From assembly GCF_001194135.2 (NCBI RefSeq), contig NC_068990.1, positions 16,426,276 to 16,490,275 of the forward strand: DNA of 64,000 nt, in the 5' to 3' direction. This document shows positions 19,066 through 43,817 of this stretch, one piece after another. The notes below the pieces were generated by a model. The model had not been told where the DNA came from and made no database searches. It saw only the letters and a list, made by a program, of their open reading frames with translations. How positions within the stretch are numbered: position 1 is the stretch's first letter; the number at the start of each line of letters is the position of its first letter. Position numbers and translations under genes: made by a program. This DNA is from Octopus bimaculoides. Lineage: Eukaryota.

Positions 19066-19230
19066 ATGTTGTTGGTTTATTCTAGTTTGGTGTTTTACGC
19101 TGGTTTATTTCTGGGTGTCGAAGGTCATGGTCGACTGATGGACCCGCCTTCCCGGTCTAGTATGTGGCGATTGGGGTTCAAGACTCCATTCAACTATGAT
19201 GATATTGAGCTATATTGTGGAGGAATGGCG
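19066..19230 (+). CDS. AA15-type LPMO copy 1, exon 1 (20-aa signal peptide plus HGRLMDPPSRSSMWR...)
   Basis: ATG 19066, hydrophobic leader ending VEG, His as first mature residue; donor GTattt at 19231; 165 nt, phase 0. Confidence 0.92.
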
Positions 19231-19963
19231 GTATTTATTTTCTATTTGTGTTTATCTTAAATTTCTTCTTTTATCAATAATTAATTAATGTATTCAGGAA
19301 AATGCAAATAAACATTTTTTGTTTATTTCTAAATTTGTCTCATTTTAAATTGGTGTAGACTTTGATTTTGTTTATAAATTATTCTGCCTATTCATATTAT
19401 TGATAATAATATGCATACATTTGTGTTATAATTGGATTCTGTGTCTAGAATTCTTTTTTTATAATGATAGCCAACATAAATGTTGGTTTGATGCTTGCTT
19501 GCTTTCTCCAGTCATGTTTTTATATTATATGTAGAGAGAGAAAGCAAGAGAGTAAAAGATAGAGAGTGAGTTAACATAAGTGAAGCAGGATGAGTGTGCA
19601 TACTAGGCTTGTTAACAAGCAATGAGTAAAAGAATGCTACAGAGAGAGAGCGAGAGAGAGAGAAAGAGAGGAGTGAGTGAGTGAGAGAGAATGGTAGAGA
19701 GAGAAGAGAGTGCACGAGTAAATAACACTAGTTATGGGAGGTGTTGAACAAATGAGAAATTAATTTTGTTTAATTTTATTTTAAGAGATATTTTTCCTTT
19801 GAAAATCAATATTCATTTCATTATTTTGTATAAGTGCAAAGAAATTTGATAAAAGTTAAATTATAATTATTGTATGTATGCCATATTACCCATGGCAACA
19901 AAGTTACCTATTATAGCATGTTCTATGATGATTAATGTCATCTTTTTTTAATCATTTCAACAG

Positions 19964-20336
19964 CATCAATGGACATTTAATCATGGAAAATGTGGAATAT
20001 GTGGTGACCCTTATGAAGGCCCACGAAAGAATGAAGCAGGTGGTAAATATGCAACTGGAATCATCAGTCGTTATTATCACAAAGAACAAATCATTACAGT
20101 TGATGTTGACCTGACCACCAACCATTTAGGCTGGTTTGAGTTCCGCTTATGTCCAAACAACAATGTAAAGAAACCTGCTACCCATGAATGCCTGAATAAA
20201 TATCTTCTCCGACAGGCCAATGGCAATGGAACTAGACTTTATATTGGTCAAAAAGTGGGACATATTTTTACAAAACTAAAATTACCAGCTGGTCTTACTT
20301 GCTCTCAGTGTGTTTTACAATGGAAATACCATACAG
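19964..20336 (+). CDS. AA15-type LPMO copy 1, exon 2
   Basis: Acceptor caacAG, donor GTgaga, 373 nt. GKCGICGDPY, NEAGGKYATGIISRYY, LTTNHLGWFEFRLCP (second His), LPAGLTCSQCVLQWKYHT. Confidence 0.95.
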
Positions 20337-20963
20337 GTGAGATGCTGTTTGATTAAAAGCTTTGTGTGTGTGACAGTTATTGCATTATTACTTCATTCTT
20401 CAATTCTTTAAGTCCCTTAAATCTTGCTCTGTGATACTCACTATTATATTATATAAAAATGCTAGTAGCAGTACTTAACCATACCTGGGTGCAAAGAAAG
20501 TTACATTGCCCACAACATTCTCTCTGAAAAATATATGCTTATCATCATCATTGTTTTAACATCCACTTTTCCATCCTTGCATGGATATGATGGAATTCAT
20601 GAAGGCAGATTTTCTATTGCTGGATGCTCTTCTTGTCACTTGCCTTTACCTGTTTCCAAGCAAGATGATATTTCTGCATGACTGGAAAATTGGAAATGAA
20701 TGACTTGGCTTGTATGATGGTGATTGTGACACTTGTTTACAACTCTCATGCAGTATTGAAAGAAAAATAGGGAGCAAACATACACACACTCACACACATT
20801 ATATAGCCATAGAAATCTTGCCAAAGCAGACTCTGAAGACCAACACAGCCCTCAGTTTAGATGGATCCTGTCTAACCCATGTCACCATGGAACATAGACA
20901 TTAAATGATGATAATGATAATGATAGCTTTCTCTCTATATATATAATATAAAAACATGGCGGA

Positions 20964-20999
<36 letters not shown>

Positions 21000-21232
21000 G
21001 GGCTACAACCTGGGACTCAGTACTGGATTGGCATTTCATTTATCAATCTTGTAAAGATGGAAGGCAAAGTTGGCCTCAGTGGATTTGCATTCAAAGTACC
21101 AGAATGACTACAACAAAGCCATTTATTTGTTGCTTTAATAATGCAGCCAGTTACCAACCTTGTATTTTACACTATTAAACATTTAAAATTTTAAATAATT
21201 GATTGTGTTTTTCCTTATATTTTTTTTATTAG

Positions 21233-21582
21233 GGAACACATGGGGTGCAGGTAATAAATGTGTTGGAATGGGATGTTCCGATGCACAAGAAGAATTCTAT
21301 GGCTGTGCTGATATAGCCATCTTGGACAAAGGTGCACCAATTCCATCAACAATACGACCACGAACTGCCAAACCTCATGTCAGTACTTCAAGATCAGGCC
21401 ACATGAAACATTCCACAAACCATCGAAGACCATCAACACAAATTCCAAGACGTTCTACAAGTGTCCCTCAAAAATTCAAGAATTGTCATGCTATTGGTGC
21501 CTGGGCTGGTATCTATGATAACTGGTGCAAAGACTTCTGCCCAAAGGGAAGCTGCCCCAAAAATATGTGTCGTTGTGCCTGA
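21233..21582 (+). CDS. AA15-type LPMO copy 1, exon 3 (end of catalytic domain, linker, 6-Cys module); full protein 295 aa
   Basis: Acceptor ttattAG, phase 1. GNTWG...CVGMGC..AQEEFYGCADI, linker, CHAIGAWAGIYDNWCKDFCPKGSCPKNMCRCA, TGA. Confidence 0.93.
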
Positions 21583-21590
21583 ATTTCATA

Positions 21591-21596
21591 AATAAA
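21591..21596 (+). terminator. Candidate polyadenylation signal, LPMO copy 1
   Basis: AATAAA 9 nt after the stop; an equivalent signal follows copy 2. Confidence 0.45.
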
Positions 21597-22449
21597 ACTT
21601 ATTTCTATATCCTGAGTTGATGTATAAAGATCATGAATTATATCCATGATATTTAAGAACTTGATTATTAACACATTATTAAACTCAAGTATTTTAGTAC
21701 AACACAATAAATATTAATGGAATAAACTTTCATGCATATACAGAATCAGCTAAAATGTTAGTTAAGAGTTACATATTTACAATAGCAGAAAAGCACAAAT
21801 TGTATATATAATTCATAATTTAATTTAATATTTATCATGATTTAATTTGATTACCATTTTTCTTAGAAGAATACTATCAATATTCTTAAAGTGTCATCAG
21901 AATATTATTATTAAATTGATGTCATTCATAGCCCAGTGTGTTTTGCACACACATTGTCTATAAGAATTTCTCTCCCAAGACATTGTCTTCTGTGAAAGTC
22001 TTTCCACATTTGAGTGTACAAATGTGTTAAATATAATTGTTTACACATATATTTATATTATCAAATTATGAATGATATGTAAAAGTTAAGCTTTCCTGCT
22101 ATTTTCAATTTTAAATAAGATCTATAAAATATTACAATGTTACTATTGTTGTTTTAAGCCATAGTTAGTTCTTACCGAGCAGAACTATTAACAATGGCAT
22201 TCCAGCCATAACTAAACCATTTTTTTATTCAGTGTGTCTAGGATTATATTACCCAATACCTTCTCTTTTTCTTTTTATGAAAAGAAAAAGACACATTTAG
22301 GTATGATTTGAAGGAGATTTAAACTGCTATTTCTAGCAAGTCAAGCAACTGCATTAGGTTCTTTTGTTGATGTTTAGCTGTTTGGATGTGATGGGTGAAA
22401 TCTTTTGCAATGTTTTCTTCATATTTTGAAATTAATTCCTCTATATTAT

Positions 22450-23270
22450 TACCCTGAAAGATCTGGTTATAGTTAAAACAAAGTTGGAAGGGGAATTAAC
22501 AGATATTATGAGGAAAATGCATCGTTGGAAGAACAGACCAAGAAGAAGAATATTGCTTTCTTTATTAACTACAAGGTTTGGCAAAAAGATCAAGGACGAC
22601 AAAATACAGTGTGAGTTACATAAAAAAAAGACAAATAACAAAACAAAAGAAAAACAATAAAAAAATTTGAACAAAGAAAATATTCCTCAAAAGAGAATGA
22701 CCTCTAAGGGCTATTCATGTAAGTTTCACAAAACTATGTTTATTCTGACCACTAAGGCAAGCAACTTCTTCCAATTATCTCTCTTGAAGAAGTTAATGAG
22801 GGTCTAACTAAAGAGGAAGGTATCTGTTTTCAACCCTTCAACCTCATCCACCTTTTTTGCTAAGGGCAGATGACAGATGAAATCTGCTTGCCCTTCTTGG
22901 CCAAAGAAAGCAATAGGGCAATCTTCACAATGCACTCAGCTGCTAGCTGAAGCTGTCTACATGTGATAGCAGCTGTTTGATATAACTCCACAAGTCAGCA
23001 ATGCTTGGATATTATATGAATGCAAGAAGAATGGTTTCATTGCTCTGTGCACACCCCAAACGGGCCTGGTTGATGGCACTGTCTCTCAATGATTTTATCT
23101 TGAACTAAAAATGCCCCAAGTAGTACTGCCAGGTTAGGGATTTTTGGCAATTATCCATGGGTCCCTGTCTGAAAGTCCTCTGGAACAGACCAGCCACAAT
23201 TTTCACAAAGATCCCGATTCCCTGAGAACGTGTTACTTTTTCATGCCAGCACTATTTGAACATCTTTCCA
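22450..23270 (-). mobile_element. Tx1/L1-like LINE 3' end relic
   Basis: Degenerate minus-strand translation (CAQSNETILLAFI-x-YPSIADLWSY, EGQADFIC, LINFFK) followed by a T-rich 3' UTR with aataaagaaagc. Confidence 0.45.
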
Positions 23271-23286
23271 AAGGGTTGAGTTGAGA

Positions 23287-23300
23287 TGTGTGTGTGTGTG

Positions 23301-23355
<55 letters not shown>

Positions 23356-23420
23356 NNNNNNNNNNNNNNNNNNNNNNNNNNNNNNNNNNNNNNNNNNNNN
23401 NNNNNNNNNNNNNNNNNNNN

Positions 23421-23468
<48 letters not shown>
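23287..23468. repeat. (GT)n/(GA)n microsatellite with N gap
   Basis: Direct reading. Confidence 0.95.
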
Positions 23469-23471
<3 letters not shown>

Positions 23472-24260
23472 AGTTGTGTGAGAAACAAGTAGGTAAGATG
23501 ATGGCAGCATAGAAATATCTTAAAGTCTCTGTTAAATAGGGTGATAAGATTTATCAGTTGAATTTGATAAGTAAGAGATTTATGCCTTGTTAGAGAAGCA
23601 AAGAAATTATGAGTAAGATGAGGGATCATTGTGAACGAAAATGACTCACAATCTAAGAGTACCCAAGATGACTTTTGTGAAAATCAAAAATTCAAGGTTT
23701 TTAAAGTCACACAAAGAACTTCAAGACTCTCTCAGGATTTTGGTGCTAAAATTAAGAAAGTCCCTTTGATTTGTGCTGATGCCACTCATATCCATCAACA
23801 AATGAAATTCTCTGGAATATAAGTTAGTAGATATGATGTCAGTTGCATGGGTTCAATATGGTAGATTTTATTAGAGCCAGGAATGCAATGAGATCAAATC
23901 CAAAATGTGATCTGTTACAGATATCATTATCAAGTGTATTACAAGTTAATCTATAGACTCAGTTTTTAACAACATAACAGTGTTAATAAGAATGATTATA
24001 ATAATTAGTGAGCCACATGAAACTTCCACATTTTAATCATTATTTTTAATCTGTTTTGATGCCTATACAGTTGGATAGTGTTTATTGAGATATATTTCCT
24101 ATGGCTGGATGTCTTTCTTGTCACCAACTTTCACCTATTTCCAAGCAAGGTAATATTTCTCCAAAGCCAGACATTGCAGAGCACTGGAAATGAATGAAAC
24201 TGTTTGTATGACAGTGACAATCATTTTATAACTATCGTGTGATTCCAGACAATGAAGCAC

Positions 24261-24336
<76 letters not shown>

Positions 24337-24376
24337 NNNNNNNNNNNNNNNNNNNNNNNNNNNNNNNNNNNNNNNN

Positions 24377-24436
<60 letters not shown>

Positions 24437-24576
24437 TGTATGTATGTATGTATATGTATATATAAAATAGTAAAGACCCCTTTCAGTCATGAATGACCAA
24501 GGGATTGCACCTAGAAAGTTACCCTCCCAGGCACAAGTCCAGGCAAGGTTGTTTATGGAAGNNNNNNNNNNATCAT

Positions 24577-24613
<37 letters not shown>

Positions 24614-24923
24614 GTTTAATGTCTGTTTTCCACACTGGCATGGGTTGGACGTTTTGACTGAGGTCTGGAAACCAGTGGCTCCACCAGGCTCCATATATAT
24701 ATATACATGAATGCATACATATAAATATACATGTGATGGGCTCCCACACAGTTTCTGAATCCAAAATACATTCACAAGATATTGGACTTGGTCCAGGGTT
24801 ATAGAAGACACTTGCCTAAGTTGGTGTGCAGTAGGTCTGAACTCAAACCCACATGGTTGCAAAGCAAGCTTCTTAACCATACAGCCATGTCGTATATATA
24901 TATAAATGTTGCCCGTGCACATG

Positions 24924-24961
<38 letters not shown>

Positions 24962-24975
24962 GAAATATAATAAAA

Positions 24976-25370
24976 GGCGCAGGAGTAGCTATGTGGTAAG
25001 AAGCTTACTTCTCAACCCCATGGTTTGGGGTTCAGTCCCACTGCACGGCACCTTAGGTAAGTGTCTTCTACTATAGCCTTGGGCCAACTAAAGCCTTGTG
25101 AGTGGATTTGGTAGATGGAAACTGAAAGAAGCCCACCATATGTATATATATATATGCTTGTTTGTATGTGTTTGTCACCCCACCATCACTTGACAATGGA
25201 TGTTGGTGTGTTTATGTCCTTGTAACTTAGCGGCTTGTCAAAAGAGACCAATAGAATAAGTATTAGGCTTACAAAGAATAAATCTTGGGGTTGATTTGTC
25301 CAACTAAAGGCGGTGCACCAGCATGGCCACAGTCAAATGACTGAAACACGTAAAAGAATAAAAGAATAAA
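24976..25370 (+). mobile_element. Near full-length SINE family A
   Basis: ggcgcaggagtagctatgtggtaag...ggttcagtccc head, conserved body, (aaagaata)n tail. Confidence 0.85.
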
Positions 25371-25439
25371 AGTATATCATCATCATCATCATCATCATTT
25401 AATGTCTGTTTTCCATGCTGGCATGGGTTGGACAAATAA

Positions 25440-25697
25440 AGCACCAAAACACCATTTTGAGCCTGGCTGTTGCCAGTACCGCGTGACTGGCCCTTGTGCC
25501 GGTGGCACGTAAAAGCACCCACTACACGCTTGGAGTGGTTGGCATTAGGAAGGGCATCCAGCTGTAGAAACTCTGTCAGATCAGATTGGAGCCTGGTGCA
25601 GCCATCCGGTTCACCAGGCCTCAGTCAAATCGTCCAACCCATGCTAGCATGGAAAGCGGATGTTAAACGATGATGATGATGATGATGATGATGATGA
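25440..25697 (+). mobile_element. RTE 3'-UTR-derived short element with (GAT)n tail
   Basis: Same sequence as the 3' ends of the RTE copies at 17100-17395 and 41300-41762. Confidence 0.8.
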
Positions 25698-26603
25698 TAT
25701 ATATATATATATATATACAGTATATATATATACTTTTATTCTTTTACTTGTTTTAGTCATTTGACTGCAGCCATGCTGGAGCACTGCCTTTAGTCGAACA
25801 CATTGACCCCAAGACTTATTCTTTGTAAGCCTAGTACTTATTCTATCAGTCACTTTTGCCGAGCCACTGAGTTATGGGGACGTAAACACACCAACATCAG
25901 TTGTCAAGCGATGGTGGGGAACAAAAACAGACACACAAATATATACATATATATATACTGATATATAATTACAGCAAAACAGTGTGGATAAGCACACCAA
26001 CATACTTGAAATAGATGCTAATAGCTCTATAAACCACATATTATTTTACTCTGTTAGTACAGGCTGAAAGCAGGCTGGTAGATCAATCAGATTTTAAAAA
26101 GAAGGGTTACCCATAGATTGATTTCTGCCTTAGGGAAGCAATTTCCCCCTGCTGTCTTCAGTATGGGATGCCGAAAGAATATACATGTAGATATTTATAC
26201 ATATCATATGATCAAGTTATATCCACACCAATATGTACATACATCTACACATATATACTATTTAAATCTAATTCCTTCAGCACAAACCATGTGCTTTTAT
26301 GATCAAAATAAATACTGCAGTAAATATAAATTGATCAGGAGTAATTATACATATTTATTTATAATTAATTAATTAAGGATAAAACTATTTAATGATTCTG
26401 TCAAGTGGCCAGCATGTTAATTCCATTTAGGTAAATATTTATCCTGATACATAATTATATAATTATAGCAAAAGGGTGTGGATAAGCACACCAACATACT
26501 TGAAATAGATGCTAATAGTAATTTGATGCAGGTAATTTATCCTGTCCCTCTCCGACTTTTAGTTCTTGCACTTGAAAAAAAAATGCATTATTTATGGGAT
26601 GAC

Positions 26604-26640
<37 letters not shown>

Positions 26641-28431
26641 GGCTTCTTTCAGCTTCCATCTACCAAACCCACTCACAAGGCTTTGGTTGGCCTGAGGCTA
26701 TGCCAGAAAGGCACTTGCCCAAGTTGCCATGCAGTGGGATTGAACCTAGAACCATGTAGTTAGGAAGCAAACTTCTTACCACACAACCAGTTGTTGTTAT
26801 TGTTGTTGTCATTATTACTATGGTTGTGACTAATAAGTAGCTTATCATGATATTACCTTTTAAAATGTTTTTAATATTTAAATAAGAGTCAAAGGCTAAG
26901 AAAATGTCCCCTGTATCCATATAAAAATTTTTAAGTGCTCCCTCCTTCAACAAACTGGGAAGGCACAACTCATTTTGAAAAACACTACTCTAAGTTGATA
27001 TATATTTCAAACACTGGGTATATGATGACTGTTTATAGTAAGGGCAAGGAAACATTGTACTATAAGAAGTGACTCAGTAGTGCATAAAAACCTGTGGTAG
27101 TGCATTTTTACCAAGAAGAAGAATGAAGTTTCAGTTTTAAAATTTATAGATATGCAGCTGTCATCTGTCATATGATGGGTAACTTTGGAAATATATATTC
27201 ACTGCCATGAGTAATGTCAGAAAATATAGCATACAAACAATAAATTTAATTTATCTTTTATCATATTTCTTGGTCCTTATACAGAATGATGAAATGAATA
27301 CTAATTTTCAAATGAAGAATATTTACTATGTAAAATAAAATTAAATGAAACAAATTTCTCATTTGCATAACTCCTTCCATCCTACTTTGTCAATTAATCT
27401 CTCCTCCTCTATGATTCTGTTGTTCCCAATGTGTGTCTAATGTTCCTTTAGTCCAGTGGTTCTTAATCTGGGGTCATGACCCCTGGGGGGAGTTGTTTGG
27501 GGTTTCTCGGGGGGTTCATGGAAGGTTTGAGAAAACGTAGTTTATTTCATGTATTTGAGGTATTGCATTGCAGCTGTATTACAGTGTCATGCATTGCAGC
27601 CACTAACAGTATCATGACTGTATGTGCTTTGCTCCTGCTCTGTGACTCCCATGACACTTTACATTCCAAGACTCACTTATTAGTTCTCAGCTACACTGCT
27701 GTTTATTAATCTCTGGTCACATGATTACACAAGCTTGTCTGTGATTGGTGTGCTAGAATGAGTGTGGTGTTGTGTTAATTTGTGTGTTGCTGTGTTGCTT
27801 AGTGCACAGCTGTGTTGTAAAGGTGAGTGTTGTATTTGCCTGTGCCTTGTCAAGTGGTTTAATTCAGCGTTGTTGTGTCTATTATTTTGTGATTTTGCTT
27901 ACTATACTTATTTAATACACTTGANNNNNNNNNNNNNNNNNNNNNNNNNNNNNNNNNNNNNNNNNNNNNNNNNNNNNNNNNNNNNNNNNNNNNNNNNNNN
28001 NNNNNNNNNNNNNNNNNNNNNNNNNNNNNNNNNNNNNNNNNNNNNNNNNNNNNNNNNNNNNNNNNNNNNNNNNNNNNNNNNNNNNNNNNNNNNNNNNNNN
28101 NNNNNNNNNNNNNNNNNNNNNNNNNNNNNNNNNNNNNNGCACAGCTGTGTTGTAAAGGTGAGTGTTGTATTTGCCTGTGCCTTGTCAAGTGGTTTAATTC
28201 AGCGTTGTTGTGTCTATTATTTTGTGATTTTGCTTACTATACTTATTTAATACACTTGATAATGCAATATTTACATTGTATACTGAGTTCTTATTTTCTC
28301 TTCATGTCTGCAAGTTTCTGAAACAGATTTTTTATTTTCTTTGCAGATACACTTTTGTTTCCTGTTTGCAGTAAGTCTGTCAAGAAGCATACATACAATG
28401 AAGCCTTTCTCAAAATGGGTTTCACAATTAT

Positions 28432-28559
28432 CTGGCATTAGGAAGGGCATCCAGTTGCAGAAACTCTGCCAAATCAGATTGGAGCCTGGTGTAGCCACCT
28501 GGTTCACCAGTCCTCAGTCAAATCGTCCAACCCATGCTAGCATGGAAAGCGGACGTTAA

Positions 28560-28610
<51 letters not shown>

Positions 28611-28620
28611 GTGATGATGA
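28432..28620 (+). mobile_element. RTE-tail element inserted in the hAT
   Basis: ggcattaggaagggcatccag...ggacgttaaat(gat)n. Confidence 0.8.
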
Positions 28621-28893
28621 ACTCTTTGGTCAAGCCACAATGCATCATTTGCACCAAAGTTTTGAGTTACAAAAGTATGAAGCCAAGCAAACTTAAGTCT
28701 CATTTTGAGTCTTGCCACAGCCAACTGATAGACGAAAGCTTGAACTATTTCAAGCAAAAAGAAGCTTCTCTGAAGGCCAGTCACATTGATCCCACTGGTC
28801 ACTTTGCTTGTCAGAACAAAGCAGTGCTGGAGGCTTCTTACAGATTTGCTTTAAAAATCATGTAGACCAAGAAGCCACATATCATCTGATTAA

Positions 28894-29110
28894 TCCTTTT
28901 GTTACTGTATTTATTTTGAGATGCTCTGTGTTTCTTTAAATTACTTTAAATATAACAAAGAATTTAGTAAAATAACTTAATCATTCAGCTAGTGTTAGGA
29001 ACATAAATTGTGACTAAGGTTTGGTGGAAGATTTTAATTCAAAACTTATGAAAACAAGATATTTGTACTCAGAGCCAGAGCCGGTTTCAGCTGGGTTGGT
29101 AACAAAAGGG
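28894..29110. mobile_element. piggyBac-like MITE with TTAA target duplication inside the hAT ORF
   Basis: TTAA(28890-93) tccttttgttac ... gtaacaaaaggg TTAA(29111-14). Removing it restores CTG ATT AAG CCT TGC (LIKPC) of the transposase. Confidence 0.85.
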
Positions 29111-29641
29111 TTAAGCCTTGCATTCTGGAAGCAATGAAGGTGATTCTTGGAGAACAGCAGGCACATCAGTTGAGGGCAATTTCCCTTTCAAATGATACAG
29201 TCAAAAATCAGATCTTGGACATGAGTGAGAATATTCTATTGCAAGTGGTGACTGCTGTGAAGAGTAGTCCTGTGTATTCATTGCAACTAGATGAGTCAAC
29301 AGATGTTGCCTCATGTTCCCAATTCCTTGTTCATGTTCACTACCTTGACAGAGAAGTTATGAATGAAGAGTACTTGTTCTCTGAGCCAGTGGCCACAACT
29401 ACTCGTAGAGAAGATATTTCCAAAATTCTAGAAGCCTTTCTCATTGAACAAGGGCTGAGCTGGGAAGCACTTGTTGGTCTGTATACAGATGAGGCTCTTT
29501 CAATGATTGGTTGCAAATCCAGTTTCAAAGCCTTTGTGAAGAATGTTGCTCCATATGTTTCCTTCACTGATTGCATGATTCATTGTTATACTTTGGCAAT
29601 GAAGTCTCTCTCACCTGGACTTCAAGAAGTGCTCACAAATG

Positions 29642-29722
<81 letters not shown>

Positions 29723-29812
29723 CATGCACACACACACACACACATGCATGCACACACACACATGCAGGCACATACATACACACGCACACACACAAACACA
29801 CACTCATACACA
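29642..29812. repeat. (CA)n compound microsatellite
   Basis: Direct reading. Confidence 0.95.
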
Positions 29813-30890
29813 TATGAGGGTTCTACTAAAAGTAATAAAACTGACATAGGTAATTCAAATTGAAGATGTCAGTAGAGTAACTCTTCATGTACACAAAAGT
29901 ACTACTTAACACAGTTTCCATCATAAGTGATGTATTTGTGCCATTGTTGAACTGTCTTTTCAAATCCTCTATGAAAAATTCAGATGTACACTGTTGTGCC
30001 TGCTTTTTCACAACTACTTTCACATTGTCTGTGCCATTAAATCATTGTCTCCAAAGATTGCCCTAACATTGAACTGAACAAGTAGAGGTCAAATAGCCCC
30101 AGATCTATGTTGTGTGGTAGATGGGTGACCACTCACCAGCACCATTTGTTGATTGCCTTATTTGTTGCCAAAGATGTATGTGGTCACATAATGTAATAGG
30201 GAAAGTAGATAATTTTCTGATTCTTATTTGGTGTCTTCCTCCTAATGGCTTCTCTATGTTTTTTAGAATATCTCACTGTATCACATGCTGTTCATGGTAA
30301 GCCACATTCCAGAAAATCAAGGAGAGTAACACCTTTTTCAATGACAAAAAGCAGTTGCCATGGTTTTTTTAACCAATCATACGCTTTTGAACTTCTTAGG
30401 CCTTAGGAAAGTGTAACACCATTCCAAGACTGAGCTTTCATTTCCAGATCATAAAGATACTCATTTTTCATCCCCTATCACCAGATCCAGAAAAAAATAA
30501 ATAAACGTGTTTTCATTAGTTTCAAATGCTTTCAGTAGATCAGAGAAAACCTCCACACTTCTATTCTTCAAATTCGATGTCAACTGCCAAGGTACTCGCT
30601 TTTCATACATTTTCTGATACCCAAAGTCTTCCACCGTAATGCAAGATGTCTAGTTATGTAGCAAGCTCACAAGAGAAATGCAACACAACTTGCAGAGACC
30701 TAGGAGAGCTCTACTCAAAATTGAATTTTCTCACCTTTAAATAACTGTTGGTCAAAAAGATTCTAAAATTTGTTTGGTGGGAAAACTTGCATGCTTTCTA
30801 TGAAGTTGCTGCCTTAGTCATAAATAAGTCAGCCAATGCCGATAGTCAAACCATATTTTCTTGGTGCTAATTCTTTTTATGACAACTCTT
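29813..30890 (-). mobile_element. Degraded mariner transposon
   Basis: TA plus tgagggttctactaaaagt terminus. Minus-strand remnants KGVTLLDFLE, PHT, HLPHNIDLG-x-FD (degenerate HPPYSPDLAP) and VKVVVKKQAQQCTSEFFIE. The right TIR is degenerate near 30865-30890. Confidence 0.7.
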
Positions 30891-31471
30891 TTCATTTCAT
30901 GGAAAATACAGAGGTCTTGATTCTAGACAGGAAAAAACTGAGAACTATGGTTCAAATCTCAGCTTGGTTCCCACTACAAGTCCAGCATGTTTTTTGTCAT
31001 GGAAAAGTTAGCTGCTTCATGAAGTATAATGCTTCAGGCGCAATTCTTTTACTAAATTCATCACAAATGGTACCAAACCATAACAATTTTCTTCAATATT
31101 TCTCTTGTATTTCTTCATTTCAGTTGATATCCATCTTTGAAAATCTTAAATGTTTCAATCCATCCATTATCATGTTCTCAATTATTACATTTTCTCTCCC
31201 ATTTAAAGCCATAAAATAAAACATTTGCTGATCTCTTTTGTAAATGATCAATTAAAACTTGTTCAGCTGTGAAAGAAATCTGTAACTTTCTAACCAAGAT
31301 TTTAGAAGATATTCTAAATAGAGTTGTCAGAATGTTTCTTACAGTCTATGGTGTGTTTCTTGCTGTCTATTCATATCATTACTTTAATTCTTTCCTTTTT
31401 TTGTTTTTCTTGTCACAAACCATCATTTGTTTCCTCAGATANNNNNNNNNNNNNNNNNNNNNNNNNNNNNN

Positions 31472-31812: not shown

Positions 31813-31825
31813 TAAAAGATAAGGC

Positions 31826-32935: not shown

Positions 32936-32977
<42 letters not shown>

Positions 32978-33039
32978 TCATGCTATTTTCTGTATGTTAT
33001 ATATATTAATTTATTTTCTATATGTTATATGTATTCATG

Positions 33040-33190: not shown

Positions 33191-33194
33191 TTTT

Positions 33195-33790: not shown

Positions 33791-33899
33791 TCTCGGTGTA
33801 TAAGGCCTCTACTACTTTCACCTTGAATATCTTCATCATCGATGTTATTGACTAGTCCCCTCCCACCAAATTTCAGGCCTTGTGCCTATAGTAGAAAGG

Positions 33900-33953
<54 letters not shown>

Positions 33954-34300
33954 TTCTTTGCCCAGCTTCTAATGCTGGAGATGTACTATGGTGTCAGCTG
34001 TTCACTACCAGTGAACTAAGGTAACACCTCTTATTTTTCAAGTACCTTCTAGTGCTGTTTTCTGCAAGTGTTTCACCCTTATTGCAGCCCCTATTTGTTC
34101 CATGTACTCCTTATTGCAGTCTCTATTTGTGCCATCATCATTATCTGTTGGTGTTGACTGGAAAATTCCAGAGGAGAGTGACGTTTTTACCTTCAATGAC
34201 TGGCTCAGGATGATGTTCATACCAGTAAGCAGAAGTGCTAATTTTGTAGTGTTTATATATTTTCCAATATGAATACTGTCATACCATATCATGGCAATTA
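33900..34300 (-). mobile_element. R4/Dong-clade 3' end with (TAA)n tail
   Basis: ...IGAAIRVKHLQKTALEGT (R4-type LQKxxLLGT terminus), short UTR, then (TAA)n at 33900-33952. Confidence 0.65.
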
Positions 34301-35349
34301 TTATTATTTCAAGATAGTGAGCTTTCTTGCATTATTGCAAACCATAAAACATTTTCTGGTGGTGGAACAGATTAGTTTCAACAAAACAAGTATGGGGGTA
34401 TGTCATAAAAGGCAGTGTGTCCTTGCTTGTGGAATTCATCAAGGCAAGGGCAAGGGATAAAGTGATATACCTTTGTTTTTCAATAAACTGAGGGGATTTA
34501 CATATGCTTCAAAGGAGTAGTTGAAAGAAATTATGGTGAACGTGTGAAATGATGCAAGCTCCATCAGCCAACAGGGCATATGAAATTGTGTACTTTTTCA
34601 AGATTGAGAAGACACAGTGTCAGGCAACGCAGGTGTCCCACACACACGTTGATGTCATAGTATATGGGGAGATGCAACACAATGGATGTGGCCAGAGACA
34701 TTCCTATGATTGTTGACTCACGAGTAAGCTCTGAAAAGATATGGAAGCTTTGGCAATCAGTGAAAACCATAAGCTATCCAGGAGCTGTACTCAATTGTGT
34801 GAGTAGAGAGGAATGTAATCAGATGAGAAAGAAAGGGCAGAAAGCCCAGTTGCTTCTGGGAGTAAGAGCCACCAGAGGGATTTCTCCCCAGAAAAGTAGG
34901 AAAAGTAGAAAAGGAAAGAAGTAACAGCAATAGTAGCTCTCAGAAATCCCTGCTCCAAGGGTACCACTGATAGCAACTCCAATGTTAGCAGAAGAAATCA
35001 TTTGATCCTCAGTATCAGGAGCCAAGAACTGGGTTGAGCACTGAGAAGCAGAGGGGTTCTCTCTTCCAGCATAGAGACAACCAGATATTACAACCAATTG
35101 TATCACCATATCATCTTGAAACTTTGGGGATGAACTAGAGGCCTGGTGAAGGGTGGAATGCTATCATGCCGAAAAGAAAACCTAGACACAGTAAAGATGA
35201 ACAAATCCATTCCCAAAACAAGTAAAGTATAAGGAACCTGCTTCCATCTTTTAGGAGAATATGAGGTCCACAGTTCTTCAAATCACCAACAAAGGTCATG
35301 ATTGACTCACTGATGTACACACATTTACAATATACATATACACAAACAT

Positions 35350-35381
<32 letters not shown>

Positions 35382-35603
35382 TGTGTCAATATTCATGCTA
35401 TGAANNNNNNNNNNNNNNNNNNNNNNNNNNNNNNNNNNNNNNNNNNNNNNNNNNNNNNNNNNNNNNNNNNNNNNNNNNNNNNNNNNNNNNNNNNNNNNNN
35501 NNNNNNNNNNNNNNNNNNNNNNNNNNNNNNNNNNNNNNNNNNNNNNNNNNNNNNNNNNNNNNNNNNNNNNNNNNNNNNNNACAATATACATATACACAAA
35601 CAT

Positions 35604-35635
<32 letters not shown>

Positions 35636-36120
35636 TGTGTCAATATTCATGCTATGAAAGTATAATCCAAGTCTTTTGTTTGTAACCATCTCACCCATTT
35701 CCTATGCGCAGGAAACTCAGGTTCATATTATTCACATGTCCATTTCTAAGACAATAGGGTATGATTTGAAGGAAATTTGGCTGCATGAAACAGCAGGGGT
35801 GTTGGACAATATGTGTATTAATTTCTGTTACTTATATTCTGTCTTCCAGTGGTGTTCACCTCATTTTCTGTTCACCTAAGTATCAATAGTACATTTCCAT
35901 CAGTTCAGTTTATTATGTCTTTAAACATGTACTCCTATGCCAATTACTGTAATCAGTATTAGTGCAAGAGAGTAAAGTAAAATTGGCACTCAAATGATTC
36001 ATGTTAAAATTTACAATTTTATTTCATGCTTTTATGGAAGATGCTGCACTGAAGTGTCAAACAGTCAACCAAAATCAAACTTACCCAAACCCTTTTAATT
36101 GCTATCTACATTTTAGTTAC

Positions 36121-36159
<39 letters not shown>

Positions 36160-37019
36160 ATGTCTGTCTGTCTGTCTAGTTGTCTTTCTCTGCCTCTCTT
36201 TTATTCTCTCTCACAAATTTGGGACATAGACATATATAAGATTTGTCAGATCTTTAGAAAGCTACAATATTAAGGAACTCATAACCATGTTGCTTATGAC
36301 CTAAAAGGTTTTGAGGCAGAACAGATCTGTATAGTAATACAATTAACTGATTCTTACAATTAATTCTGAGAGGAATAATCAGTAAGTCATTTTGCAGCAT
36401 GTTTTTGATATTAATATTACTAGTGGTATCTATCTCTGTTTTTGTTTAGCTATCAAATCAGCTTTGCTCAAACAGACCTATGATCACAAAGCATTCTAGT
36501 CATGACACTCTTGTTTCTTTTTATTTTTTTGTAGATATAATGTATCCAACATACCTTTCTTAAGACATTATGGTACAATTTGAGGGAGATATAGTCACTA
36601 ATTCAAGCAGGTCAACTTCTTATGTAGAGCTATCTTTGTTGGCTCTTTAAGATCACAGGAGAATTTAGTATTGCAAATTAATGAATTTTTCACTACCTTT
36701 GTGCTTTGAATTACATTTTCCAATGGTGTGTATTTGTAAATTGGTGAAGTGAATTAGCAAGAGCTTTGTCTCTGACATAGAAACCATCATTTACATGAAT
36801 TGTCACAATATCCGTCTTTTTGTCAGTAGGCCAAAACATCGATCAAATTTGCTTAGCATTCATTATATACTTTAGTCACAAAAATTTCCTTTACAAACAA
36901 TAATAAATAACAAACATTGCTAAATTTTTGTTGATCTACTAATTTTTCTTTTTATCTACTCAAAATTATCTATCTATGCTTGCTCCATTTTTAATTTAAA
37001 AAATGCAAAATAAAAGAAA

Positions 37020-37160
37020 ATATGATTTCAACACTGTTGATAAGCATGGGAAATTACCCATCTGCTTTCTTCAATTATCCACTATATTCATTCTGAAGAT
37101 ATATTTAAAAGAACAACACAACACCTTTTGCTCCTGAATGCTTCACTAAACACAACCAAA
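37020..37160 (+). promoter_or_regulatory. Proximal promoter/5' UTR of LPMO copy 2
   Basis: Colinear with 18925-19065. GATAAG at 37039, palindrome at 37046-37061, TATA-like element. Confidence 0.7.
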
Positions 37161-37325
37161 ATGCTGTTGGTTTATTCTAGTTTGGTGTTTTACGCTGGTT
37201 TATTTCTGGGTGTCGAAGGTCATGGTCGACTGATGGACCCTCCTTCCCGGTCTAGTATGTGGCGTTTGGGGTTCAAGACTCCAGTCAACTATGATGATAT
37301 TGAACTGTATTGTGGTGGAATATCG
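37161..37325 (+). CDS. AA15-type LPMO copy 2, exon 1
   Basis: Identical signal peptide, HGRLMDPPSRSSMWR; donor GTaaat; 165 nt, phase 0. Confidence 0.92.
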
Positions 37326-37426
37326 GTAAATTATTTTCTGTTTGTGTTAATCTCGGTCCCAGTTCTTTCCTTTATGCTTAAATTTGTTTATTTTACTAAA
37401 TTCTAGACATCACAATATGCAACCGT

Positions 37427-37662
37427 ATGGATGCAATTAACACTGGATAAGATGAGTCTCTGTCATCGGGGTAGAGAAGATCTTACATTTCAGATCTTAA
37501 TGCAGAGAAGTTAGAGCCTGGTTCAAGCAAACTATATCGAATGATAGGGAACATAAAGATTTGTTTAAGATAAACAATTGTACAGCATTAAGATCTGAAA
37601 TGTTAAGATCTCTTCTAGCCTGATGATGGATGCTCATCTCATCCAATGTTCATTGCTTCCAT
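37427..37662. mobile_element. Fold-back MITE in intron 1 of LPMO copy 2
   Basis: Imperfect arms of about 75 bp (atggatgcaattaacactggataagatgag...agatcttacatttcagatcttaatgc and its inverse); absent from intron 1 of copy 1. Confidence 0.75.
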
Positions 37663-38830
37663 TACTACATCTACCAACATTATTATGGATTTCCAAGCCC
37701 CCAGAAACAGCTGTTGAACTTATAACACCTTACTTCCTCTCCTTTAATTTTTTTTGTCATTTGTACTCTGTGTAAGTTGGATCTATTAATATAAATATTT
37801 TTATACTTAAAAATTCATCATCAGAAAGTTTTCACCTTTTGCTTTCTCTTGTTATGCATGAATACATATATTCATATTTTGTATTTCAAAGCAAACTATT
37901 ATATTTACTATATTTAATATATTTAATGTGTCTAATTTGTTTATCTGTATAATTACTTCTATACTCGCTGAACTTGATTCTTCTTATAGCCTTTCTTGTG
38001 GAATCAATCTTCTGCAAACACATTAGAGTCTAAGTTTGAATCTTTTGAGCACTACTAAGTTTCATCTATATGGAGAATCTGTGGATCTCATCTGTGGACA
38101 ATATATATATATATATATATATCAACATCCTCATCCTCATCATCATCATTTAATATCTGTTTTCCATGCTGACATGGGTAGGATAATATTTTAATGATGT
38201 TCTAATCCTTCAATAAAGTGAGGATGCAATAAACATATAAAATGCTTAAAAGTTCATTGGGGAGAAATTAAATTTTCATGATCTTTGAGTATAACATACT
38301 ATCCTCATTTTGATAAAGTTCATTAAAACAAAAAATACAGAAAGGATTATGAATATTAGATTTACAAAAGATTGAGCAACAGGTATCTTCTGAAGTTGAT
38401 CTGGTTGACCACACCACTACCTAATCCAGGTATTAGCAAAGTGGTCTATGTTGACCCCTGGTGTGGAAGTCCATGAGTTCATAAACACCTGAAACAATTT
38501 TGAACATTAAGGGTACTGAATCATTATCAATATAATTTGACTGAACTTTTATTGTTCTTTATCAATTTCACTAAGTATTTTCATTAAATTTCTTTAAATA
38601 TATCTTATTAAAAAGCAGTAATGGCACAAAAGAATGACGGAATTATTGTTTTTAAATCAAGAAATTTTTAATTAAAATATTTGTTAATTTAATCTAGAAG
38701 TTTAAATCATGGGGGTTAATAAGTTATCAATGCTTCCATGAAGAGGTCAGTGGCGTAAAAAGTTTGCCAACCTTTAGCGTAATCAAAATAATTAATTATC
38801 TGACTTTTTCTATCTTTTTATTATTTATAG

Positions 38831-39203
38831 CGTCAATGGGAAAAGAATCATGGAAAATGTGGTATATGTGGTGACCCTTATGATGGCCCAAGAGAGAACG
38901 AAGCAGGTGGTAAATATGCAACTGGAATCATCAGTCGCTATTATCACAAAAACCAAGTCATCACAGTTGATGTTGACCTCAAAAACAATCACCTGGGTTG
39001 GTTTGAGTTCCGCTTGTGTCCAAACAACAATGTAAAGAAACCTGCCACACAAGAGTGCTTGGATAAATATCTTCTCCAAAGTGCTGATGGTAGTGGTAGT
39101 CGTATTAAAATTGGTCGAAAGACTGGCCATATTTACACCAAGTTAAGGTTGCCAGCTGGTCTCACCTGTTCTCAGTGTGTCCTCCAGTGGAAGTATCATA
39201 CAG
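38831..39203 (+). CDS. AA15-type LPMO copy 2, exon 2
   Basis: Acceptor tttatAG, donor GTgagg, 373 nt. GKCGICGDPY, LKNNHLGWFEFRLCP, LPAGLTCSQCVLQWKYHT. Confidence 0.95.
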
Positions 39204-39669
39204 GTGAGGTTTTTAACATAACTTTATTTCTCTTTCTCCAAGTCCCAACTAGCCATCAGTACTCAGTAATTGAGCTGGTTGGCATCCAACCCATTTCCTA
39301 ATATCAATAATCTGTGTGGCCAGTATTTACCTCCAGTTTTCATAGCATTAAGCTACAAATGTGATGTTAATCATACCCTGGATTGAACACTGGTCTACAA
39401 CTAGTAGCTTTACACACAGAAGGAACTGAACTAAGTATTGCTGCAAGCTAACTATTCATTTGTATATTAGCAGTGATGCTGCTACTTGTTCTTAGTCTAC
39501 TGTACTCCTATTTACAGCTAGTATGACTGAACCATTTGAGAATTAAGTGTTTTGGTCACAGTTATAATAAAGGTTCTATGATAGGAAATGGAAAGGACAA
39601 TATATCAACTAGTTGTCTGCTGCCCTGTCTTCACAGCCATCCACACTCTCTTAGAATAACTGTCTTTTA

Positions 39670-40320
39670 GGCAGTGAGCTGGCTGAAGAGTTAGAACCTT
39701 GGAAAAAATACTTTCCAGTATATGATCTGGCTCTTCACATTCTATGTTCAAATACCATCAAAATTAATTTTAACTTTCATCTTTTCAGGGTTGATAAAAT
39801 AATGTACTAGTCTGTACTGGGGTCAATGTAATCAACTAAACCCCACCACTTCCATTAAAATTGTTGGCCTTGTGTCTGAATCAGAAACCATTATTAAGGC
39901 AGCAATCTGGTAAAATCATTAGCAACATTTCTTTCAGCTCTTTACATTCTGAGTCCAAATTGCACTAAGGTTAACTTTGCCCTTCATCCTCTCAGGGTTG
40001 ATAGAATAATGTATCAGTCTAGTAATGGAGTTGATGTAACTGACTAACCAATGCTCCTCTTAAAATTGATAACTCTGAGTAGGAACTAAAAAGTATTATT
40101 ATAATTTTTGTTTAAGTTATTGAACTTGCAAAATAATTAGTGCATCAGAGAAAATGCCTTGGGGAATTCTTTCCAGCTCCTTCTATTCTGAGTTCAAATC
40201 ATATTGATGTCAACTTTGACTTTCATCCCCTCCAGGGTCAACAGAATAAAATACCAGTTTAGCAGTTAATTCCCCTTTCCACAAAACTGCTAACCTTGTA
40301 CCTAAATTAGAAACAATTAT
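39670..40320 (+). mobile_element. Cluster of three SINE family B copies in LPMO2 intron 2
   Basis: Repeated ttctgagttcaaat...ctttcatcc...gttgata..ataatgtac units with TTA tails. Confidence 0.7.
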
Positions 40321-40684
40321 TATTATTATTGTTTCGACTTTGAAGATGAAAGAGATGTATCTGATTGCATTTAGGATTCAGCAGTTTATATTGTATCATC
40401 TGTGCTGTGCTTACATTCTGTGTTAAGCGGCAAAATATTTCTATATCCAAAAGAGATGACAAAGGACTGAGATATGTGGTGCATTGCTGTGCTCAAGAAA
40501 ACCTGTCCACTACAACAAAACTGATATCCTAAAATGATGATGATGAGGAGGAGGAGGATAATGATGATGATGATGAATAACTGATATAAGCATTGGTTGG
40601 TTGGTTGGTTGGTTGATTTCTCCAGTCAAGCTTCACATCATGTAGAAAGAAGGTAAAAGAGAGACAGAGAGAGAGTTAACATAA

Positions 40685-41712
40685 GAGATGCTAGTAACAA
40701 AGGGCCTCTTGCTCAGAGTGAAAGGTAGACTGTATGATGCATGTGTGCAAACAGCCATGCTACACAGCAGTGAAACACGGGCCATGACTGTTGAGAACAT
40801 ACATAGGCTTGTAAGAAATGAAGCTAGTATGATCCGCTGGATGTGTAATGTCAGTGTGCACACACGACAGAGTGTTAGTACCCTGAGAGAAATGTTGGAC
40901 ATAAGAAGCATCAGATGTGGTGTACAAAAGAGATGACTGTGCTGGTATGGTCAAGTGCTGTGTATGGATGAGGAGAGCTGTGTGAAGAAGCGACACACTC
41001 TAACAGTGGAAGGAACCTGTGGAAGAGAGAGACTCAGAAAGACATAGGATGAGGCGGTGAAGCACGACCTTCAAACGGGCCTCACAGAGGCAATGACAAG
41101 AGACCAAGACCTTTGGAACTATGCTGTGATTGAGAAAACCTGGCAAGTAAAATGAGGTTACCAGTGTCGCATAACCAGTCCATTTAAAAGTACCTTTGAA
41201 TCATCGGGTGATACGCTGCACTACAGAAGACCTATTAAGTCAAGTAAAATCAAAAATCAAAAGCAAACCAAGATTGAAATCAAAATGGAAATTGTACTTG
41301 TGGCCGATGCCAGTGCTGTCTGACTGGCACCCATGCTGGTGGCATATGTAATAAGCACCATTCAAGCATGGGTCAATGCCAGTGCCACCTTACTGGCTCC
41401 CCGTGCCGGTGGCACGTAAAAAGCACCATCCAAACGTGGTCAATGCCAGTCTTCCACCGACTGGCTCCTGTGCTGGTGGCACTTAAAAAGCATCACCCAA
41501 ATGTAGTCGATGCCAGTGCCGCCTGACTGGCTCCTGTGCCAATGGCACATAAAAAACACCCACTACACTCTTGGAGTGGTTGGCATTAGGAAGGGCATCC
41601 AACTGTAGAAACCTTATCAGATCAGATTGGAGCCTGGCGCAGCCTACTGGTTTGCCAGTCTCCAGTGAAACCATCCAACCCATGCCAGCATGAAAAACGG
41701 ACGTTAAACAAC

Positions 41713-41762
<50 letters not shown>
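40685..41762 (+). mobile_element. 5'-truncated RTE LINE with repeat-containing 3' UTR and (GAT)n tail
   Basis: KGRLYDACVQTAMLHSSET, RNEASMIRWMC; about 60-bp tandem units tgccagtgcc..actggctcctgtgc..ggtggcac in the UTR. Confidence 0.85.
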
Positions 41763-41763
<1 letters not shown>

Positions 41764-42699
41764 AGGCTTAGTGGCAGGCAACAAGTAAAGGAACACTATA
41801 CACACACAGTAAGAAAGAAATAAACATAGGAAGGAGGAGGAGGACGAGGACGAGGACAACGACGAGGACGACGACAACGACTGAATTTTGTGTTTTACTT
41901 ACATGCAGCTTGTTTAACTAATTATTTAATTGTCAAATTATATCACAAGCATGATTAGAAAGTTGAGCCAGTTCAATTTGGTCATAGTTTCCCAAAATGT
42001 AACAGTGAAATTCTATCAAACAGTAATGAGAACAGAACCTTGTACCTTGGTGTCCATTCCTGCATTGTTGTTCATATAGTGGTTGTTTAGATAATTATTG
42101 CTAATTATCTAATTCTGTTTGTAGTTTCACAAATCTGCTAGGATAATCAAGAGGATGATACAGAAATGTGTGCTTTTAAAAGAGTAGAATGTAGGAAGAA
42201 AGAAATAGAAATCCCCTGCCCCATCAATGTCTTATGGTTGAAGACTGGTTTCTGTCATGATATAATTTGTTATTAAGATGAGATACATGAGACCTCAACA
42301 TTGCTTCCTTCAAATAAGGACTTGAGCTTTACACTGCATGTTGACAAAATACTTTCTTTAGTAAACTGACAATACTTTCTGGTACAATTTTACAATCAAA
42401 TGAACTAGGCTGCTACGGAATTATCTTGTTTATGGATACAATATAGTATAGCCTTAATGACAAATGCAAACAGCTGATGTTTGACATCTCTGATGCTCTG
42501 ACACCATATTCCATTCAGCAGTAACAAACAAAATAGTACTTTACTTTAAAACATTAGTCACTGAAATATAGTTAAATAATACTCAATATTTGATATTAAA
42601 CTGTATAAGTGAAATAGAAAAATATCTACATGTGTAGTGATTGATGAAACTTGAACTACACTTTTATTGCTTGACAAGTGACCATGTCATCAATTATAC

Positions 42700-43090
42700 T
42701 ACAGATTATCTCTGATACTTGGCAGATATTTTATTTTATTGACCTTGAAAGGATAAAAGTAAAGTCAACTTCAGTGAGATTTGAACACAGAGTGTAAAGA
42801 GCTGGAAAAAAACAGCAAAGTATTTTTTCTGATACTCTTACAATGCTGTCAGCTTGATACCTTAACACCAGCTCAGTAATAATAATTCTTACTAATTTTG
42901 GCACAAAGCCAGCAATTTTGAGGGAAAAGGGAAGTCAATTCTATCAACCTAAGCAATTGACTGGTACTTTATTTTATCTATCTCAAAATAGATGAAAAGC
43001 AAAGTCAACCTCAACCAAATTTGAACTCAGAATATAATGAGTTGGAAGAAATACTGCAAAGTATTTTTCTTAACACTCTAAAAATTCTGT
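42700..43090 (-). mobile_element. Two SINE family B copies
   Basis: Reverse complement of the family B core. Confidence 0.65.
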
Positions 43091-43503
43091 TGGTTTGCTT
43101 GATTAATTATTCTTAAATTAGTTATTGTCATTTGTTTCTGCTATTTTAACTATAATAATTCATCTCCTCAAGATAACAATATGTCAGATAGTGCTAGCAA
43201 GATAGGTTATTCTTCTAATATGCAATGTAGTGAGTATTTCCTACTTTGGTTTGATTTTACAAGAAAAATCTCATGAACTGGATAATGAATAATGATTGAT
43301 AACTGCTTAGAGAAACTGCCAGTGAGCCTGTTTGTCTTTGGTGTTTCCAATCAGTACTTATAGTAATGTCAGATTAAAATATTAACATCCTGACAGGGAA
43401 TAACTGAGAAAAACACATAAAAAATATATAATCTTATAAATGAATATAAAAATAAATTAAGAAAAACATATAAAATTATATTTTAAAAACTGCCTTTTTT
43501 TAG

Positions 43504-43817
43504 GTAACACATGGGGTAGAGGAGACAACTGTGTTGGAATGGGATGTTCTGAAGCACAAGAAGAATTCTATGGTTGTGCAGACATAGGCATCTTGGACAA
43601 AGGTGCACCAATTCCATCAACAATACGTCCACGAACTCACAGACCTCATATCCGCATCACTACCAGCCATGTACAAAAACCATCACAGCCTACAAGACGC
43701 CCTGCAAGCTACAAGAATTGCCATGCTATTGGTTCCTGGGTCGGTATCTATGATAATTGGTGCAAAGACTTCTGCCCAAAAGGTAGCTGCCCATCAAATA
43801 TGTGTCGTTGTGACTGA
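43504..43817 (+). CDS. AA15-type LPMO copy 2, exon 3; full protein 283 aa
   Basis: Acceptor tttttAG, phase 1. GNTWGRGDNCVGMGCSEAQEEFYGCADI, shorter linker, CHAIGSWVGIYDNWCKDFCPKGSCPSNMCRCD, TGA; AATAAA at 43825. Confidence 0.93.

Follow-up and report, generated by a model that had tools for sequence, protein, structure and literature searches.

In a 64,000-nucleotide stretch of the Octopus bimaculoides genome (contig NC_068990.1, positions 16,426,276 to 16,490,275 of the forward strand; hereafter the window), two tandem paralogues very probably encode secreted, copper-dependent lytic polysaccharide monooxygenases (LPMOs) of family AA15, and their most likely role is the turnover of the animal's own chitin. 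We established their gene structure, family membership, conserved catalytic residues and fold, together with the homology of their C-terminal module and purifying selection on the pair. The window has a G+C content of 36.8% and contains fifteen N-gaps in its 64 kb. The two genes, called gene 1 and gene 2 here, comprise the following features (positions in the window).

18926 to 19065, forward strand: proximal promoter and 5' untranslated region (UTR) of gene 1, with a TATA-like TATATTTAAAA at 19005, 61 nt 5' of the ATG.
19066 to 19230, forward strand: gene 1 exon 1, aa 1-55, with the signal peptide (aa 1-20), His21 and the start of the AA15 domain; phase 0 donor GT.
19964 to 20336, forward strand: gene 1 exon 2, aa 56-179 plus one base, with the AA15 core and the second brace histidine, His109; phase 1 donor.
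21233 to 21582, forward strand: gene 1 exon 3, with the end of the AA15 domain (QEEFYGCADI, axial Phe201), the linker (aa 210-262), the six-cysteine module (aa 264-294) and the stop codon.
37021 to 37160, forward strand: proximal promoter and 5' UTR of gene 2, with a TATA-like box as in gene 1, at 37100, 61 nt 5' of the ATG.
37161 to 37325, forward strand: gene 2 exon 1, with a signal peptide identical in amino acids to that of gene 1, and His21.
38831 to 39203, forward strand: gene 2 exon 2, with the AA15 core and His109, which is preceded by the unusual Lys106-Asn107.
43504 to 43817, forward strand: gene 2 exon 3, with the end of the AA15 domain (Phe201), a shorter linker, the six-cysteine module (aa 252-282) and the stop codon.

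Joined across its exons, the reading frame of gene 1 spans 888 nt including the stop codon (295 aa) and that of gene 2 spans 852 nt (283 aa), and both are open throughout. Exons 1 and 2 measure 165 and 373 nt in both genes, giving intron phases 0 and 1, and all four introns run from GT to AG with a polypyrimidine tract at the acceptor. A preliminary description of this DNA had proposed a tandem pair of intact three-exon genes with the same intron positions and phases, encoding 295 and 283 aa. Exon lengths, splice sites and open frames all agree with this proposal, and the two same-strand copies are under purifying selection, with an overall ratio of non-synonymous to synonymous substitution rates (dN/dS) of 0.23. 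The motifs it had listed were also present in the translated models, namely NHLGWFEF, QEEFYGCADI and a histidine after a 20-aa leader (MLLVYSSLVFYAGLFLGVEG followed by HGRL). An AATAAA sequence lies about 9 nt 3' of the stop codon in each gene (at 21591 in gene 1 and 43825 in gene 2), and both genes are compact units with an mRNA of ~1 kb. Using tblastn with either protein as query, we found exactly two AA15 copies in the 64 kb, each of three exons. A third, hidden copy in the window was ruled out by this search, which returned two exon sets only; the inter-gene gaps total ~535 nt as estimated.

Gene models from other octopods were consistent with these structures. The best protein match to gene 1 was O. 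sinensis LOC115215838, an "uncharacterized protein" of 295 aa that is 96% identical and syntenic, and is the gene 1 orthologue. The next-best match, from Argonauta hians, showed 73% identity. The O. sinensis protein model agrees with gene 1, and a 282-aa model from Argonauta hians agrees with gene 2; the three-block exon layout was recovered by tblastn at both loci. The predicted splice junctions thus have independent support, which consists of orthologous gene models. These protein matches, together with a nucleotide identity of 89-94% to O. sinensis DNA, bear out the cephalopod origin that the preliminary description had thought probable, and they indicate an Octopus species closely related to O. 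sinensis but distinct from it.

On every feature that sequence can test, both proteins belong to family AA15. They match the Pfam LPMO_10 hidden Markov model (PF03067) over model positions 1-183 of 183, with 74.3 bits (E = 2.5e-20) for gene 1 and 71.9 bits (E = 1.5e-19) for gene 2, against a cut-off of 23 bits. The sole PDB sequence match was 5MSZ, TdAA15A of Thermobia domestica, which is the founding AA15 structure (E = 2.7e-52), and the alignment runs from query His21 and chain His1. In this alignment, His21, His109 and Phe201 of gene 1 correspond to His1, His91 and the axial Tyr184, respectively. An AlphaFold model built with 50 homologues had a mean predicted local distance difference test (pLDDT) score of 82, with most of the catalytic core above 90 and a poorly modelled linker. 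When this model was compared with 5MSZ using Foldseek, the match had an E-value of 1.1e-22, a template modelling (TM) score of 0.91 and a root-mean-square deviation of 2.6 Å over 194 columns; the matches that followed were AA10 and AA11 LPMOs. Both the AA15 assignment and the histidine-brace signature of the preliminary description are borne out by these results, with His21 at mature position 1 by the 5MSZ alignment and His109 as the second histidine. Its further statement, that an axial Phe is typical of chitin-active enzymes, holds as a typical feature but not as a universal one: Phe occupies this position in 119 of 122 homologues and in the chitin-specific insect LPMO15-1 enzymes (PMC9156745), whereas TdAA15A has Tyr184.

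These conservation counts were made in an alignment of both octopus proteins with 120 database homologues (n = 122). The first histidine was kept in 121 sequences and the second in all 122, while Tyr44 was found in 103 and Trp183 in 88. The residue before His1 was Gly, Ser or Ala in 118 sequences, as expected for a signal-peptidase site; in the octopus proteins, the leader before His21 is hydrophobic, 20 residues long, and carries Val at -3 and Gly at -1. Ten cysteines are present in the catalytic domain of both proteins (C51, 65, 68, 118, 131, 168, 171, 189, 194 and 204). Nine of them align with cysteines of TdAA15A, and C189, which lies in a Gly-rich loop, is shifted by four residues; the AA15 catalytic domain has been described as having ten conserved cysteines (PMC5823890). 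Gln198, Glu199, both histidines and the axial Phe are intact in both genes. Between the paralogues, dN/dS was 0.17 in the catalytic domain, 0.14 in the module and 0.57 in the linker.

TdAA15A resembles the octopus proteins in catalytic-domain sequence (47% identity), fold (TM 0.91), histidine brace and ten cysteines, but differs from them in its axial Tyr184, Tyr166 and Ala89 and in having no C-terminal module, and it is a gut enzyme. Bacterial chitin-active LPMOs of family AA10, such as CBP21, also have a Pfam LPMO_10 domain, a histidine brace and an axial Phe, but their similarity to the octopus proteins is distant only, and their disulfide pattern and carbohydrate-binding modules are different. 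An identity of 20-30% has been reported between AA15s and other LPMOs (PMC5823890).

The last 31 residues of both proteins form a six-cysteine module (C-x13-C-x3-C-x4-C-x4-C-x-C) that was absent from the preliminary description. Both proteins end in CHAIG(A/S)W(A/V)GIYDNWCKDFCPKGSCP(K/S)NMCRC, and the linker before the module is basic, rich in Pro, Ser, Thr and Arg, and 12 aa shorter in gene 2. This unit occurred 105 times in the 122 aligned sequences, with up to five copies per protein joined by Thr/Pro linkers, and its consensus is CxAxGxWxGxxxxDxWCxxNCxxGxCPxxxCxC. No relevant Pfam family was found for the module alone or for multi-module proteins, even at E-values up to 10. A profile made from 61 modules was then run against 1.84 billion representative proteins (E ≤ 0.001), and 660 carrier proteins were detected among these representatives, one of them with 22 tandem copies. 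When 94 carriers were scanned with Pfam, LPMO_10 was found in 21, GH18 in two, trypsin in one and immunoglobulin domains in one, with one weak match each to TFIIA and CPG4; most carriers had no other domain. Named carriers include proteins of Littorina and Pinctada and a transcript of the haptophyte Phaeocystis cordata. The Phaeocystis cordata sequence (P0171) has four module copies, and the carrier with 22 tandem modules (P0121, 1459 aa, from an ENA metagenome contig) has no recognisable catalytic domain.

An AlphaFold model of the module (pLDDT 89) contains a helix at residues 12-18 and a strand at residues 29-30, in the terminal CRC. Of the two cysteines in WCKDFC, the first (15) lies within the helix and the second (19) immediately beyond its end. 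In the cysteine-stabilised alpha-beta (CSab) peptide fold, CxxxC lies on a helix and CxC on a strand, and three disulfides link them. The cysteine spacing of the module (CxxxC, then CxC) suggests a fold of this kind. Profile matches in the PDB, to scyllatoxin-scaffold miniproteins and a scorpion toxin, were not significant (E = 0.11-0.65), and Foldseek returned no match for the 31-residue module model.

The module has a counterpart in insects. Group I of the insect AA15s is defined by two six-cysteine repeats (C-X15-C-X3-C-X6-9-C-X4-C-X1-C), which the authors of that definition regard as unrelated to CBM14 (PMC9156745), and in a 2025 paper the insect motif was still described just as conserved, with no function assigned (PMC12955341). 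Using the LPMO15-1 sequences of Tribolium, Locusta and Ostrinia from the supplement of PMC9156745, we found that the module profile matched both repeats of all three proteins end to end, with the six cysteines aligned and 18-32 bits for each repeat. In a full-length BLASTP comparison, gene 1 and TcLPMO15-1 showed 39% identity (E = 3e-68). Like TcLPMO15-1, LmLPMO15-1 and OfLPMO15-1, the octopus proteins consist of a signal peptide, an AA15 domain of ~190 aa, a linker and a C-terminal six-cysteine repeat. His1 and His2 are common to the two sets, octopus Tyr44, Trp183 and Phe201 correspond to Y44, W188 and F206 of TcLPMO15-1 (PMC9156745), and both have a Trp at the position of Y166 in TdAA15A.

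The octopus proteins nevertheless differ from LPMO15-1 in several respects. They have one module instead of two, with first and third cysteine gaps of 13 and 4 residues instead of 15 and 6-9, and their basic, Pro/Ser/Thr-rich linker is unlike that of LPMO15-1. Five of the six residues in the group I active-site set (H, Y, A, H, W, F) were matched in octopus; the exception was the apical Ala, which is replaced by Thr or Asn. The module is thus homologous to the group I repeats but single and differently spaced. To judge from these comparisons, the octopus proteins have an LPMO15-1-like architecture but fall outside the insect subgroup in its present definition, because repeat number and apical residue both depart from it. 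Furthermore, the octopus has two tandem copies of a gene that is single-copy in insects, and it does not moult. An AA15 domain followed by one to five six-cysteine modules is also found in dozens of bivalve, gastropod, brachiopod and annelid proteins; these relatives and the O. sinensis protein are database predictions labelled uncharacterised.

Copper binding, chitin specificity, C1 regiochemistry, binding by the module and the tissue role are predicted here by analogy with characterised enzymes. Signal-peptide cleavage after Gly20 would expose His21, whose amino group and side chain, together with His109, would hold one copper ion in a histidine brace, with Phe201 beneath the copper. Reduced copper, with H2O2 or O2, would oxidise C1 of a glycosidic bond in crystalline chitin, and the nicked chains would then be open to GH18 chitinases. 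The basic, proline-rich linker would carry the six-cysteine module, which probably anchors the enzyme on chitin or a chitin-protein matrix. The substrate would most likely be the animal's own chitinous structures, such as the beak, the radula and the cuticular linings of suckers and gut, with turnover and not digestion as the role. We favour turnover of the animal's own chitin because, apart from carrying a single module in place of two, the octopus proteins are laid out like arthropod group I LPMO15-1. Both alpha- and beta-chitin are substrates of OfLPMO15-1, which oxidises them at C1, is inactive on cellulose and acts in synergy with a chitinase, and RNA interference against group I blocks moulting, leaving insects trapped in undigested old cuticle (PMC9156745).

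A digestive role for the same enzymes is possible but considerably less probable. The preliminary description had proposed remodelling of the animal's own chitin or digestion of prey, and both are reasonable suggestions. In this case, they would be secreted from the salivary or digestive gland and act, alongside chitinases, on the chitin of crustacean prey, with the firebrat gut AA15s and the insect midgut group III LPMO15-3 as models. Octopuses eat crustaceans, gene duplication is typical of digestive enzyme families, and a digestive role is compatible with everything in the sequence. In addition, the gut proteome of Thermobia includes 21 AA15 proteins (PMC5823890), and group III enzymes are midgut-specific in Tribolium (PMC9156745). 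However, insect AA15s of the gut type have nothing beyond the catalytic domain (PMC9156745), whereas the octopus proteins bear the module seen in group I, the group that serves cuticle turnover. Data are available for two molluscs, and they also argue against digestion: in shipworms, AA15 genes show barely any expression in digestive organs (PMC8561940), and in oyster nuclei data, two AA15-type proteins mark a mantle cell type along with chitin synthase (preprint, bioRxiv 10.64898/2026.05.15.723513). Judging by these analogies, we consider turnover of the octopus's own chitin a clearly better explanation than digestion of prey.

Several points weigh against this interpretation of the pair. TdAA15A is active on both cellulose and chitin (PMC5823890); therefore, the family assignment alone gives no chitin specificity. 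Our literature searches found no expression, protein or activity data for any cephalopod AA15, and those on AA15 or LPMO in cephalopods, on shell matrix or on O. sinensis locus names returned nothing specific. The tandem arrangement depends on scaffolding over the five gaps that lie beyond the collinear O. sinensis sequence. At the copper site, the apical residue, two before His109, is Ala in 88 of the 122 homologues, in TdAA15A and in all characterised AA15s, but gene 1 has Thr there and gene 2 has Asn. The apical Thr is shared by gene 1, its O. sinensis orthologue, the Argonauta protein and 12 other homologues. Position 106 is Thr in 121 of the 122 sequences, the exception being gene 2, with Lys. 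Because Lys106 and Asn107 replace Thr106 and the common Ala, gene 2 may differ in its chemistry and reactivity.

One or both proteins could even be non-oxidative, serving as chitin-binding structural, immune or other copper-binding proteins on an LPMO fold. We regard this as unlikely, with gene 2 as the likelier case. The Lys106-Asn107 pair of gene 2 is in keeping with such a role, as are the spacing of the six cysteines, which resembles that of CSab peptides (defensins and scorpion toxins), and the occurrence of up to 22 module copies in long proteins that have no catalytic domain. However, the PDB matches to toxin and defensin folds lacked significance, Foldseek found none for the module model, and neither gene has lost a histidine of the brace, the axial Phe, Gln198, Glu199 or any of the ten cysteines. 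Moreover, gene 2 is not decaying, as the catalytic-domain dN/dS of 0.17 relative to gene 1 indicates. Exon 2 of gene 2 has an Argonauta counterpart with 89.7% amino acid identity, which argues that this lineage has long been conserved.

The two genes are separated by six N runs (23356-23420, 24337-24376, 24562-24571, 27925-28138, 31442-31471 and 35405-35580). All of them fall after the gene 1 stop codon (21582) and before the gene 2 start codon (37161), and therefore no exon, intron or reading frame crosses a gap; the closest gaps outside the pair, at 18078-18337 and 46035-46569, lie beyond both genes. The 15.6-kb spacing and the tandem same-strand arrangement do depend on these gaps. O. sinensis chromosome DNA is collinear with window positions 14366-23858, with 89-94% nucleotide identity including non-coding sequence, and the compared O. 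sinensis locus, which extends 10 kb past gene 1, bridges the first inter-gene gap only. That the pair is an assembly artefact, with two alleles or two distant loci scaffolded together across the gaps, is nonetheless very improbable, because a protein difference of 21%, a synonymous divergence of 0.55 and unalignable introns are far too much for alleles, gene 2 exon 2 groups with Argonauta and not with gene 1 (81% bootstrap), and both genes stay real even if the distance between them is wrong.

Divergence between the paralogues is mosaic. Overall, they share 79% protein identity, and the synonymous divergence and unalignable introns given above rule out alleles mistaken for paralogues. Nevertheless, the block comprising 140 nt upstream of the ATG and exon 1 (18926-19230 versus 37021-37325) is 95.4% identical between them, a value also obtained for gene 1 against its O. 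sinensis orthologue in this block, and homology stops abruptly upstream of the 140 nt. In exon 2, the DNA identity of the paralogues is 81%. Neighbour-joining placed gene 2 with Argonauta for exon 2, and the two Octopus copies together for exon 1 (85% bootstrap) and for the module (81%). This pattern fits an old duplication followed by gene conversion at the ends, and it also fits a promoter and leader that the two genes share and that are strongly constrained. In Argonauta hians (BAAFZT010000028.1, 8855-9064 of locus L002), part of exon 2 (aa 96-165), with 87% identity to gene 2, was also observed as a stray copy ~1 kb upstream of the Argonauta AA15 gene.

The remainder of the window contains several fragments that resemble mobile elements. 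Upstream of gene 1, an open reading frame (ORF) at 17375-17968 (forward strand) has a PIF1-like helicase domain (E = 2.5e-39) and is probably a fragment of a Helitron-type transposon; the gap at 18078 begins 110 nt downstream. Between the genes, an ORF at 28560-28865 (forward strand) has a weak BED zinc-finger match (E = 0.0018, below the Pfam cut-off), and a 227-aa ORF at 29134-29817 (forward strand), for which Pfam gave no match, runs into a CA microsatellite. Together, these two may represent a decayed hAT-type transposase. A dispersed repeat of ~190 nt, which looks like a short interspersed element, is present on both strands in copies 85-93% identical (25496-25691, 28433-28584, 41511-41739, 45800-45996 and others), one of them inside intron 2 of gene 2. 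Related ORF fragments (...LSLRVKGRLYDACV...HGSETWA...) were found at 40688-40936 (forward strand), 46570-46893 (reverse strand) and 5548-5955 (reverse strand), one of them also in intron 2 of gene 2. They resemble the C-terminal part of retroelement ORFs; a Pfam search of the fragments at 46570-46893 and 5548-5955 gave no match.

AA15 in molluscs was reported in 2018 (PMC5823890), databases already contain hundreds of lophotrochozoan AA15 homologues, and an orthologue of gene 1 is annotated; the preliminary description mentions neither the 2018 report nor the O. sinensis model. Two points are absent from the papers and libraries that we searched: the identification of the insect cysteine-rich motif as a module that is widespread and can be repeated, and gene 2 itself, for which the protein collection yielded no counterpart above 79% identity. 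A wider proposal, which we put forward tentatively as possible and not as the expected outcome, is that the module of 31-33 residues is an undescribed, ancient and mobile carbohydrate-binding module, probably for chitin, common to arthropod LPMO15-1, lophotrochozoan AA15s, GH18 chitinases, mucin-like proteins (with up to 22 copies) and haptophyte algae. Under this proposal, the combination of AA15 with the six-cysteine module would be an ancestral protostome tool for the turnover of the animal's own chitin, its role in octopus would be the periodic renewal of cuticular linings, for example of the suckers, and gene 2, with Lys106 and Asn107, would be a copy that has diverged in function.

With this pair, cephalopods join the animals known to carry endogenous AA15 LPMOs, and exact, gap-free gene models are available for two paralogues, one of which (gene 2) lacks a close match in the searched protein collection. 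The unexplained motif of the insect moulting LPMO is a module that extends across molluscs, annelids, brachiopods and at least one alga, often repeated and sometimes carried by chitinases. Given this breadth, repetition and association with chitinases, a new family of carbohydrate-binding modules is a concrete possibility. For the octopus itself, the two genes could mark the sites and times at which the beak, the radula, the sucker linings and other chitinous structures are remodelled.

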